From NCBI RefSeq assembly GCF_001194135.2, contig NC_068985.1, forward strand, positions 9,400,968-9,464,967: a stretch of DNA of 64,000 nt, given 5' to 3'. The position numbers and the translations under genes were made by a program. The DNA is from Octopus bimaculoides (lineage: Eukaryota). Below the pieces are notes generated by a model, which did no database searches, was not told the DNA's origin, and worked only from the letters and a program-made list of their open reading frames with translations. Below, one piece after another: positions 36,201 to 39,200 of this stretch (positions are counted from its first letter, which is position 1; every line of letters starts with the position of its first letter).

Positions 36201-39200
36201 CCAGGGGGAATGCTATGTGACGAGGTGGAAACGGTGAGAGGATTTTGTTATTTGGGAAATAGGGTGGATGTAAGAGGTGAATGAGAAGCAGCTGGGTGAA
36301 GTTCAGGAAATGTGGAACGTTGTTATAAGGGAAAAGGTTCTCATAAAAGATGAAAGGAAGGATCCATAAGAGTTGTGTGAGAGCTGCAATGGTGTATGGG
36401 AGGGACATATGGTGTCTGGGGGAGAGAGAGAGAGATGGTAGTTTTGAGAAGGGCTGAGAGAGCAATGGTGAGAGAAATGAGTGGAGTGAAGCTGTTTGAT
36501 AGGAGGTGGACTGAGGATTTGATGGGGATGCTGGGGTTGGAGGAATCGGTAGAATGGTTGGCAAGGGCGAATGGAGTGAGCTGGCATGGGCATGTGTTGA
36601 GGAGGGATGAAGGGCATGTGTTGAGAAGGGATGAAGGGCATGTGTTGAGGAGGGATGAAGGGCATGTGTTGAGGAGGGATGAAGGGCATGTGTTGAGGAG
36701 GGATGAAGGGCATGTTCTGAGGAGGGTGATTGCATTTGAGGTAAATGGAGCACGAAAGTGAGATAGATCAAGGAAAAGGTGGAGGGGACAGGTGGAGGAG
36801 GAGATTGGGAGGGTTGGTTTGAAAAGGGAAGATGCCCAAAACCGGGCAAGAGGGCGAGATGGTGGTTGCTATGGCACTGAGTTACATTTGGCCACCCCTA
36901 TTAATGGGGACACAACCCAGATTTAAAACACTGGATGAAAAATAAAAAAATATCCTTTATAAAGTATCTGCATTTCATTTAATTACCTTTGTCTTTTTAC
37001 TTATTTCAGTCATTAGACTGTGACCATGCTGGGGCACTGCCTCGAAGTGAATTTTAGTCAAATAAATCAACCCCAGCATTTATTACACTTTAAGACTGGT
37101 ACGTATTCTATCAGTTTCTTTTGTTGAACTACTAAGTTGCAGGGATGTAAAGACAAATAATACCAGTTGTTAAGGAGTGGTGAGGGACAAACAGACACAC
37201 ACACACACACACAGACAAGAGGCTTTCTTTCAGTTTGTCGTCTCCCAAATCAATTTGGAGATATGCTGTGATTCAGAAGACCCGGCAACTAGAGAGGAAG
37301 AGACAGACAGACAGACATACAGACAGACAGATAGACACAGAGACTGAGAGAGCAACTGAGCGGGAGAAAGAGAGAAAGAGAAAGAGAGATAGACAGACAG
37401 ACAGACATAGAGGCTGAGAGAAAGAGAGACAGACAGACAGACAGACAGACTGAGAGGGAGAAAGAGAGAGAAAAAGAGACAGACAGACAGAAAAAGAGAC
37501 AAACAGACAGAAAAAGAGAGAGATTGAATGATTTTATGAGTGAAGGAAAAAGTGAAAGAGGGTATATGTGATTGGATGAAAGATCTGGGTAGTCGGGTGA
37601 CTGAGTGAGTGAATGGGTGTGGAGTTGACACTGTCTTGCAGAAGAATAGTTGCTGCTCTGAAATTTGGTAAATTAAGAGATGCCAGACTTGGTCTGTCCA
37701 TCAACTACTTACTGTTATAATGCTTCTCTGGAGTCTTCACATAGACAATGCTGGAATCACATTCAGGAAATGGCTAGGGAGAAAATAAAAAAAAAACAGA
37801 ACAAATATGAAATATATATATATATACATATATATATCATCATCATCGTCGTTTAACATCTGCTTTCCATGCTGGCATGGGTTGGACGGTTTGACTGAGG
37901 ACTGGTGAACCAGATGGCTGCACCAGGCACCAATCTGATCTGGCAAAGTTTCTACAGCTGCATGCCCTTCCTAATGCCAAAGATGCCCTTCCTAATGCCA
38001 AAGATGCCTTTCCTAACATCAATATTATTAGGAATTGTATACAAAAAATGTTAAAATACCTTGTGTATTGTACGGATGATACCAGTTTATTGGAGATAAA
38101 TTTTAACAACAAAATCTGATATGGATTCCCAAGGATTATATGGATCTGCAAGGGTTATATGGACCCCAGTTAAGAACCACTGGTCAAGATAAACATTGGC
38201 GACATAAAAACAGGAGACTTCCTTGCAATGAGCAACTGCCAGTCTTCCTAAAAAAATCTTGCCTAAGCCAATATATATATATATATATATATATATATAT
38301 ATATATATATATATAGCTTCAGATAAGTGTTGGTGGTGGTGGTAGTCATGATGATGATGAATACCATGTTTTCCGGCATACAAGCTCACATAGTATATAT
38401 ATGTAAACATAAGGTGTAAACATCCAGACATCATCACTCTTTCCAAACCTGCAAAAATGTTGACCTACTCTTCTATATTTTTGAGATGAATTAAGTATGT
38501 TATTTACAATGGACGGATAGGTGTCCTCATCTTTGCTGTTACTGCAACGTTTTGGTTGATGTGCTCCTTAGCCTTCATCTGGTGGAATTTTGAACCCACC
38601 CCTTTATTTGACCAATGGGGTACTCTTTTCTCATTCCTAAGGTATTTTTTGCTGATGCTATTATTATTATCATTTATTCAAGTCACTGCTTGGGATTGAA
38701 CCCAGAATCTTGAGGTTAGTAGCCGGCACTCTTAATCACTACACTATATGCCCATGGGCAATTATTGAGTGAATTTTAGGGCTTATGAACCTAATATTTT
38801 TCTATCCTTCTGTAATACCAGTTCCCATATGCTACTCGGTTTGCTTAGGAGGTTATTGTGTCCTAGCACATGTGCTGCTTCTTTTAGTTTTCGTATTTTC
38901 CAGTGGTGTTCTCTCTCTATTATTTTAAATTCATTCCACAGGGAGAGGTGGTCTCTGTTTTTCCATACATGATCAGCTATACCCGATTTTTCAACATCTC
39001 CTCCTGTCACAATATTACCTCTTTAGTCAGATAAAGGGTTGGGTTCAAAATTCCACCAGAACACCTGATGAAGGCAGGAGAGTACATCAGATGAAACGTT
39101 GTGATAACAACAAACAAGGTGAGGACACCTGTCTGTCCAATGTAAATGAAGTCAACCTACCTTTTTTCACCTGAAAAATTTGACTTGTATACAGGAAAAT

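Follow-up and report, generated by a model that had tools for sequence, protein, structure and literature searches.

Current guides define short interspersed elements (SINEs) as dependent on long interspersed elements (LINEs) (PMC8969392), and the non-autonomous elements that depend on Penelope-like elements (PLEs) are known as retrozymes (PMC7761336; bioRxiv 10.64898/2026.07.22.740005). Here we analyse a 64,000-nt stretch of Octopus bimaculoides DNA (contig NC_068985.1, positions 9,400,968 to 9,464,967; "the window", numbered from its first letter). In this stretch a PLE insertion at 38466-39148 carries, downstream of its open reading frame (ORF), a tRNA-derived head with promoter boxes of the RNA polymerase III (Pol III) type and a tail of hammerhead design, and the same head and tail also occur together without the ORF. 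This PLE with its own tRNA-headed SINE appears to be an undescribed SINE-PLE partnership, the separate parts of which are already known.

Sm-alpha and Sj-alpha of schistosomes (Ferbeyre 1998, Laha 2000, reviewed in PMC6765202) are SINE-like and hammerhead-bearing; like the octopus module, they are short non-coding retroposons, apparently transcribed by Pol III, with a type-I hammerhead downstream. However, the hammerhead of Sm-alpha is canonical (PMC4209133), whereas that of the octopus is the PLE type lacking helix III. Sm-alpha also often forms repetitive or tandem arrays from which cleavage releases monomers, whereas the octopus copies are dispersed. Nor has an autonomous element with the whole SINE in its 3' untranslated region (UTR) been described for Sm-alpha, whereas the octopus partner PLE has both head and tail. 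The original prediction, made from the letters of the window alone, knew of no SINE of this architecture. That statement does not stand for hammerhead-bearing SINE-like elements in general, given the schistosome elements; it does stand for the partner, since full texts, cephalopod repeat papers and a curation guide yielded no description of a tRNA-headed SINE tied to a PLE or of an autonomous PLE with a SINE head, Repbase, Dfam and SINEBase lying outside the scope of that search.

The minimal hammerheads of PLEs (Cervera & de la Pena 2014, PMC4209133; Lunse 2017, cited in PMC6765202) combine a CUGANGA box and a helix I of 4-5 bp with one nucleotide left unpaired on the 5' side of stem II, and have a palindrome instead of helix III, for which a dimer model has been put forward. 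They lie in the terminal repeats, where two of them often occur on opposite strands at a distance of 100-700 bp. The octopus ribozyme itself is no different, including the extra nucleotide and the opposite-strand pairs, and it is the tRNA-derived promoter module between ORF and hammerhead that is new in the octopus lineage. Metazoan non-LTR retrozymes are likewise non-autonomous, hammerhead-bearing, thought to depend on PLEs and related in sequence to the PLE terminal repeat (pLTR) (PMC7761336; bioRxiv 10.64898/2026.07.22.740005). They differ in forming tandem repeats and circular RNAs and in having neither a defined promoter nor a tRNA head, whereas the octopus module starts at a discrete 5' end of the tRNA type, forms no tandems and leaves no sign of circles in RNA or DNA joints.

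Pairs of tRNA-derived SINEs and LINEs offer another parallel: the SINE has an A/B-box head and a body, and its 3' tail occurs in identical form in the autonomous partner, as in UnaSINE1 and UnaL2 of the eel (cited in PMC10886601; general rule in PMC8969392). In such pairs the shared 3' tail explains mobilisation of the SINE in trans. The octopus partner, however, is not a LINE but a PLE, with a GIY-YIG endonuclease, inverted and partial copies and no poly(A). The LINE partners of SINEs are not known to carry the tRNA head, unlike the octopus PLE. Cassandra, Helenus and Ajax are likewise retrotransposons other than LINEs with a small-RNA gene sequence of the Pol III type embedded in their terminal region (PMC10886601), but these are non-autonomous LTR elements with 5S- or tRNA-like sequences, whereas the octopus system comprises an autonomous PLE and a SINE derivative.

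The 3' end of the octopus PLE

The insertion at 38466-39148 is a dead, old and 5'-truncated copy of a canonical octopod PLE, i.e. one with a C-terminal endonuclease. It lies on the minus strand. Its ORF fragment (38783-39011) comprises the last 76 codons, corresponding to the second half of a GIY-YIG-type endonuclease; it reads from 39011 to 38786, stops at 38785-38783 and matches a relative (P0001) at 77% (tblastn). The stop codon is followed by a 29-nt 3' UTR block (38754-38782), which an alignment and the overhang consensus upstream of the SINE head show to be kept in all ORF-linked copies. Next come a 72-nt tRNA-derived head (38682-38753), with its A box at 38746-38736 and B box at 38702-38692, an (AAT)n-like spacer (38651-38681) and a 185-nt tail (38466-38650) that ends in a terminal extension of ~33 nt. 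The evidence for the tail includes self-BLAST and a genomic-read joint (38628<->39042), and it contains a private 31-nt insertion (38597-38627). At the other end of the insertion a 14-nt filler (39012-39025, minus strand), at the edge of which genomic reads diverge from the window copy (39011), joins the truncated ORF to an inverted, 5'-truncated copy of the tail without the last ~33 nt of the element (39026-39148, plus strand). This inverted copy was found by self-BLAST and pattern search, and genomic reads cover it at 3,000-4,800x per mate class. The original prediction had proposed this layout, with a GIY-YIG-like C-terminus, a stop, a tRNA-like segment about 30 nt further on and an inverted tail copy at the 5' truncation point, and our analysis confirmed it. 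Candidate target-site duplications, both read on the minus strand, flank the insertion upstream (GTAGGTTGAC, 39151-39160) and downstream (GTAGGTCAAC, 38459-38468) and agree at 8/10 positions, or 8/11 counting the preceding base; the call is tentative because the repeat is degenerate and overlaps the terminal GTA of the element.

To read the junction between ORF and head elsewhere, we collected related proteins. The 79-aa fragment as query gave a single match, whereas a longer relative brought the total to 44 proteins, which include O. vulgaris and O. sinensis entries and many from the ENA assembly ERZ21867824; loci found through protein in this way over-represent ORF-linked copies. We read nine further ORF 3' ends: one on an ENA metagenome scaffold (L001), one in O. 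vulgaris OX597819.1 (L002), two in O. sinensis CM016859.1 (L003) and five from ERZ21867824 (two in L004, one each in L006 and L008, and L005 in part). Downstream of the stop codon all nine have the conserved UTR (ATTAGRTTTATAAGYCCYAAAAWTTCACTC; 29-30 nt to the head), the tRNA-like head, the spacer and the hammerhead tail. The ERZ21867824 sequences represent a second lineage with 63-72% amino acid identity, in which the order and the UTR block are kept and the head is ~20 nt longer in its variable region. Between the two lineages the UTR block is even better conserved than the tRNA-like module.

Raw genomic reads of the window's own species (sets X21 and X22), aligned to the window at >=80% identity, agree with this picture. 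Depth is ~0-1x on the single-copy flanks of the insertion and reaches ~700-880x (X21) or ~1,300-1,600x (X22) on the ORF end. It stays flat from the ORF end across the UTR and into the head in these reads (in X21 ~800x on the UTR and ~880-1,100x on the head), and no loose-end pile is listed at 38754. About 600 reads depart from the window copy at 39011, and their continuation encodes KIRVEEHRKA, which belongs to the upstream part of the GIY-YIG endonuclease. Read depth and this continuation indicate that ~10^3 genomic copies carry both ORF and head, a figure that assumes ~0.7x sampling (from the size of octopus genomes and the observed flank depth), and that the window copy is simply 5'-truncated. 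A distant PLE with 37% amino acid identity (L010) has a hammerhead tail of the same design and no tRNA-like module, which makes the module a trait of this cephalopod PLE lineage; two further loci (L009, L011), on short contigs with no clear 3' module, were uninformative. Judged from these comparisons, the junction of ORF and tRNA-derived head is an integral and conserved part of the 3' end of this PLE lineage. The placement of the tRNA segment within the PLE repeat, as originally predicted, is thus borne out by the nine other ORF ends and the unbroken read depth (~800-1,400x); the refuting case named there, a PLE 3' end that lacks the segment, occurs in none of the nine.

Several features of the junction were recorded separately. 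A palindrome spans the UTR/head +1 boundary (38748-38761, minus strand), reading TGCCC..GGGCA in octopus and TGTC..GACA in the second lineage; it recurs at the homologous junction in L001-L008, with one pair changed on both sides between the lineages. The 3' UTR also bears a loose resemblance to the first ~27 nt of the head, in inverted and degenerate form. We rejected a long hairpin of UTR and head, as RNAalifold backs only 5 bp of it (-4.7 kcal/mol).

The protein itself offers further clues to the identity of the element. The endonuclease carries the GIY-YIG motif VYSIPCSCG..YKGET.R.L..R..EH...E, and the Pfam GIY-YIG family matches one of 25 family members (E 0.006). An AF2 model of the endonuclease (pLDDT 66) has a beta-beta-alpha..beta-alpha core, for which the best fold match in the PDB is the GIY-YIG nuclease T4 EndoII (E 0.45, probability 0.75), with the GIY-YIG nuclease Hpy188I further down. 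Sequence-profile matches in the PDB were limited to MazF, which we regard as spurious. The window copy is truncated and has no reverse transcriptase (RT). In L006 the ORF just upstream of the endonuclease matches RVT_1 below cutoff (E 2e-4, 21 bits), and three relatives (P0011, P0016, P0021) extend N-terminally into the sequence LPFLDVLV..VYRKPT, which we take to be the C-terminus of a PLE RT. The combination of 5' truncation, an adjacent inverted truncated copy and a one-sided extension of 30-40 bp is found in the insertion at 38466-39148, at 7369-7803, in L002 and in L003, and an inverted 5'-truncated copy adjoining the insertion and a 30-40-bp extension at one end only are known from PLEs (PMC8557442). 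We accept the element as a PLE; for the endonuclease we lean towards the GIY-YIG assignment, mainly on the grounds of motif, architecture and insertion scars, the other evidence adding little.

Promoter boxes and copies without the ORF

The SINE2 class has an internal Pol III promoter of the form TGGCNNAGTGG N30-35 GGTTCGANNCC (PMC8969392). The genome-majority consensus of the octopus head has an A box (TGGCGTAGTGG, positions 8-18, 11/11) and a B box (AGTTCGATTCC, positions 52-62, 10/11) separated by N33, i.e. the two boxes at tRNA spacing and starting at tRNA positions 8 and 52. In the window element the A box (TAGTGTAGTGA) matches TRGCNNAGTGG at 9/11 positions and the B box (GGTTCAATCCC) matches at 10/11. 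The A-box/N33/B-box composite, with up to three mismatches, occurs 12 times in the window against 0.02 expected by chance, and three of these matches are heads of the PLE/SINE module. Both boxes are among the blocks best kept between the lineages, and the consensus also has loops of the anticodon type (CU-NNN-AA) and of the T type (TTCGATT). The remaining nine composite matches are heads of at least two to three other tRNA-derived SINE families (e.g. GGAGGCGCAATGGCCCAGTGGTTAGGGCAGCGGACTCGC), with other bodies and tails and no hammerhead. They lie at 5596-5650(-), 9766-9820(+), 10830-10884(+), 29109-29163(+), 32714-32768(-), 45344-45398(-), 47992-48046(-), 55687-55741(-) and 61234-61288(-).

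Self-BLAST found seven copies of the tail in the window, at 1778-1952(-), 7369-7510(-), 7613-7803(+), 12210-12356(+), 38466-38650(-), 39026-39148(+) and 59161-59332(-). Two of the three heads of the module in the window are ORF-less. The complete SINE-form copy (59161-59429, minus strand, 269 nt) consists of the head (59429-59358), (AAT)n and the tail with its hammerhead (59284-59239). It begins at head +1 and its upstream flank is unrelated to the PLE UTR, in line with the predicted SINE-like occurrence of head and tail by themselves. The second ORF-less head belongs to a composite in which a SINE-form copy starting from about +5 of the head (7369-7617, minus strand) forms the inverted upstream member and lacks the last ~33 nt, and is abutted head-first by the primary copy, a 5'-truncated tail in the opposite orientation (7618-7803, plus strand). 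The composite (7357-7814) is flanked by 11-bp duplications that agree at 10/11 positions (TTTTATAGAGT at 7357-7367, TTTTATAGAAT at 7804-7814). Of the tail-only copies, the one at 1778-1952 has its hammerhead at 1859-1904 (GAAAAGUU), and the one at 12210-12356 lacks the terminal extension and has a 3-nt deletion in the GAAACG of its hammerhead. As a separate observation, the terminal extension of the tail at 7618-7803 contains an exact 24-nt tandem duplication (7741-7788, AATGTACATAATTCCTCATCTCTT x2).

Genomic reads over 59080-59520 have sharp edges at both ends of the module, where the tail reaches ~13,000-14,000x and the head ~6,400x. Reads overhang upstream mainly at one site, exactly at head +1 (1,405 reads), and there the PLE-UTR consensus is supported at only 57% agreement. 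From these mixed overhangs we estimate that ~13% (by the depth ratio to the ORF) to ~45% (by agreement arithmetic) of heads are ORF-linked, the rest having other flanks. Under the sampling assumption given above, the ~270-nt head-tail module forms a modest family, of the order of 10^4 copies, and stands alone in thousands of them. These copies are short, non-coding and dispersed, with a discrete 5' end and unrelated flanks, as in SINE2 elements, and share their 3' tail with an autonomous partner, the PLE.

The ORF-less copies also bear scars of the Penelope type. The inverted copies at 7369 and 39148 both end at ..AATGTAAAT, ~33 nt short of the 3' end of the element, and at this internal position 1,721 genomic reads likewise break off, their remainder being unrelated sequence. 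DNA joints of the opposite-strands class connect tail positions to head +1. These scars suggest that the PLE machinery copies ORF-less RNA, and they are the best available evidence that it may do so.

Several features of the window lie outside the module. The insertion is intronic and in the same orientation as a host exon (39367-39570, minus strand) that ends in a GTGAGT donor; the splice donor at 39366 lies ~200 nt upstream of the insertion. The translation of this exon has no Pfam match, and the RNA runs examined contain no reads on it. Just downstream of the insertion an (AT)22 microsatellite (38271-38315) adjoins a triplet run of the GGT/GAT type (38326-38360), a repeat outside the element that draws ~200-450x genomic reads. 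Nine assembly gaps, totalling 1,941 N, lie at 5079-5201, 13107-13507, 20105-20401, 21416-21726, 24078-24327, 30912-30985, 39866-39903, 50949-50958 and 63275-63711, and none touches the elements described here.

The minimal hammerhead of the tail

The family consensus of the hammerhead, GACAC CUGAUGA A GGCUG(G)..(U)CAGCC GAAACGUU^GUGUU, is the majority sequence of thousands of genomic reads over 59080-59520, which restore GACAC and GAAAC where the window copy at 59161-59429 deviates. A consensus pooled from the seven tail copies had been put forward in the original prediction, and the reads reproduce it. The motif comprises CUGAUGA, one unpaired A, a 5-6-bp helix II, GAAA, CGUU without helix III and a 5-bp helix I. 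The extra unpaired A, the absent helix III and the palindrome in its place identify the PLE minimal type, as had been claimed, and the consensus contains the whole catalytic core (C3-A9, G12-A14, A15.1/U16.1, H17). The pattern CTGATGA..GAAACGTT occurs twice in the window against 0.00 expected.

Individual window copies have decayed to different degrees. The CUGAUGA and GAAA boxes are intact in five of the seven, whereas the whole core including C15.2 is intact only at 7653-7698 and 39059-39105, the other three having GAAA-A/U. The tail at 7618-7803 contains the intact hammerhead at 7653-7698 (N17 at 7693), and in the SINE-form copy at 59161-59429 N17 lies at 59244, which places the cleavage site at 59244|59243. 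For the insertion at 38466-39148 the predicted hammerhead-like core holds as a family consensus but not as a working motif of this copy: in its own tail (38541-38585, minus strand) the hammerhead is degenerate and dead, with CCAGAUGA replacing CUGAUGA and AAAAC replacing GAAAC, and the inverted copy has kept the core (39065-39100, N17 at 39100) but has a broken stem II.

The stems covary. In an alignment of 17 copies, drawn from octopus, from the second lineage and from L010, the share of paired cells is 81% as against 15-48% with a slid partner, and six of 11 stem pairs are changed on both sides (e.g. GGCUG/CAGCC, GGCCA/UGGCC, GACCAC/GUGGUC). The covariation score is 0.274 compared with 0.164 for shuffled alignments (0/500), in a sample of about three independent lineages and for a structure derived from the same sequences. 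The palindrome that replaces helix III reads AACGUU in octopus, and its ACGU is kept in the second lineage (GAAACGUA) and in the distant L010. The designated double hammerhead gains no stability over a pair of monomers (-24.3 vs -26.0 kcal/mol, 2 x -13.0), and unconstrained cofolding gives only domain-swapped duplexes.

Rfam models were run at gathering thresholds and at E<=10 on three sub-regions and seven loci. The covariance-model check suggested in the original prediction came back negative, with no hammerhead match at E<=10 in any region or locus searched, a miss to be expected if the models, as we presume, require helix III. A pattern scan of metagenomes for the hammerhead gave 57 loci, essentially chance matches plus one unrelated minimal hammerhead. 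The latter (L014, ~760-830(-) of the 1.3-kb contig Ga0126337_10219360) reads CUGAAGA A GGCUGG..CCAGCC GAAAUAU; it is of the same design and presumably comes from the PLE of another animal.

Origin of the ORF-less copies and its meaning

The explanation that we favour, and consider probable, is that the head-tail unit is transcribed from its internal promoter and then copied in trans by the PLE enzyme through the shared tail. Pol III would transcribe any PLE 3' end or SINE copy from the internal promoter into a ~270-nt RNA starting at the head. Since this RNA would bear the same 3' tail as the PLE mRNA, the PLE RT and endonuclease could copy it in trans, yielding ORF-less copies with PLE-type scars. 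The hammerhead would travel as part of the tail and, if active at all, would work through dimers as in other PLEs. Because genomic SINE copies run from the tRNA +1 to ~80 nt past the cleavage site, productive templates would be uncleaved. We infer Pol III transcription from the A and B boxes together with the discrete 5' end, and likewise infer both the trans-mobilisation and any ribozyme activity of the motif.

A number of observations weigh against this explanation. In the head consensus no acceptor stem can form, the D and anticodon stems are down to 3 bp each, and neither ARAGORN (default or relaxed) nor Rfam calls a tRNA in the head. Both programs also miss the nine other SINE heads of the window, which makes the negative call uninformative; the head may rightly be termed a "tRNA-derived promoter module", but not a "tRNA-like structure". 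The absence of TTTT from the sense strand is not significant, being found in 54% of shuffles. The share of ORF-less heads given above is a rough estimate from overhang agreement, and 50 kb of the second lineage contain no ORF-less head, so that the SINE form may be octopus-specific. The RNA data comprise three raw RNA-seq runs aligned to the SINE, two aligned to the PLE fragment and the contig sets of four further runs under two species labels. Neither in the raw runs nor in the four contig sets do starts accumulate at head +1. On the SINE and on the PLE fragment alike, the two mate classes are equal and there is no position at which molecules begin or end; along the SINE, RNA depth follows DNA copy depth at an RNA/DNA ratio of ~0.2-0.25. 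RNA from the SINE part thus looks like read-through of embedded copies. The libraries are probably unsuited to ~270-nt non-polyadenylated RNAs, and the contig sets show only that the module family is present in RNA.

The PLE itself presents a different profile. At the ORF end (38855-39011) the RNA/DNA ratio is ~1.0, four to five times that of the SINE parts per genomic copy, and the expressed copies are homogeneous upstream of 39011 (0.92-0.96 agreement). It follows that some PLE copies are transcribed, and their homogeneity suggests a young, transcribed subfamily. Two further observations were made in these data. Upstream of head +1 (59429-59431) the commonest continuation of RNA reads is an inverted head (ATGGGCATATGGCATAGTGG), i.e. 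a head-to-head palindromic SINE pair, whereas DNA reads most often continue into the PLE UTR; expression of a single palindromic locus, or of a few, could account for the inverted head. In two RNA runs reads skip 45 nt at 38902-38948, in frame and with GT..AG on the plus strand, antisense to the ORF. Some copies may have a deletion here, or antisense transcripts may have a small intron; the skip is absent from the listed DNA joints.

Instead of Pol III products, the ORF-less copies could be a preferred truncation class of the PLE, formed by an RNase P-like cut of Pol II transcripts of the PLE at the 5' end of the head, or by an RT stop or template switch at the head/UTR boundary. Such an origin would fit the heavy 5' truncation of PLE copies (PMC8557442), seen also in the window copy, as well as the lack of diagnostic differences between SINE-form and ORF-linked heads, the short conserved TGCCC/GGGCA palindrome that straddles the junction with its one compensatory pair between lineages, and RNA-seq data in which PLE mRNA is expressed and Pol III-type ends are absent. 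However, the acceptor stem that RNase P would recognise cannot form in the consensus, the weak 5-bp hairpin would be expected to cause a stall at its base rather than at +1, and the exact tRNA positions and conservation of the A and B boxes fit selection for a promoter; we regard truncation as rather unlikely. The module might alternatively be kept for the PLE itself, in 3'-end processing or stability of its mRNA, RT recognition or priming, with the ORF-less copies a by-product found mainly in octopus. Its constant place in two PLE lineages with 63-72% protein identity, the even better conservation of the UTR block just upstream and the absence of ORF-less heads from the 50 kb of the second lineage all speak for this. 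Yet L010 has the same type of hammerhead tail and manages without the module, which shows that PLE function does not need it, and the cloverleaf stems have degenerated where the promoter boxes have been kept. We consider service to the PLE doubtful as the explanation, and it is in any case compatible with transcription from the internal promoter and copying in trans.

The original prediction had also suggested that self-cleaved, possibly circular, retrozyme-like RNAs serve as templates for reverse transcription. In favour of this, the family consensus has an intact hammerhead core with covarying stems, PLE minimal hammerheads are reported to cleave as dimers, and metazoan retrozymes have been proposed as PLE dependants (PMC6765202, PMC7761336, bioRxiv 10.64898/2026.07.22.740005). 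Against this, the copies run across the site 59244|59243 and have their ends not there but at head +1 and ~80 nt beyond the site, the supported DNA joints include no head-to-tail joints, the window has no tandem array, RNA-seq shows no end pile-ups, depth dip or back-joints at the cleavage site, and the designated dimer is no more stable than its monomers. The predicted self-cleaved ends and circular forms accordingly found no support, and we hold such templates to be highly unlikely. That an unrelated tRNA-SINE was inserted beside the PLE fragment, or template-switched onto it, would be conceivable in a window with nine other tRNA-SINE heads, but the recurrence of the junction with its 29-30-nt UTR at nine other ORF 3' ends in several genomes, and in ~10^3 copies by depth, leaves chance juxtaposition a negligible probability. 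A bolder extension of the transcription and trans-copying explanation holds that selection maintains the tRNA-type promoter within the autonomous PLE, making every insertion a "SINE factory", and that the palindromic hammerhead is a handle for dimerisation or enzyme recruitment and not mainly a cutter. Through the palindromic hammerhead the small Pol III RNA could then bind the PLE mRNA or a second SINE RNA; on present evidence we think this extension unlikely.

With a family of the order of 10^4 copies and a dead copy in the window, the importance of the module is mechanistic rather than local. PLE-dependent non-autonomous elements have been known only as promoter-less, tandem retrozymes. If transcription from the internal promoter and trans-copying by the PLE enzyme are correct, the shared-3'-tail rule would extend to a third order of retrotransposons, and the ~170-nt tail including the hammerhead fold would be the likely recognition element of the PLE RT. 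As a short substrate of natural origin, it would serve the in vitro PLE system still missing from the field (PMC8557442). It would also provide a concrete route for the birth of a SINE. Were the "SINE factory" true, it would represent a new mode of SINE birth and a coupling of parasite and host for a whole retrotransposon order, and a handle function would give the long-unexplained PLE hammerhead a testable role. In O. vulgaris 893 of 900 listed recently active SINE families are "unclassified" (PMC13282606), and characterisation of the module would help the annotation of octopus SINEs.

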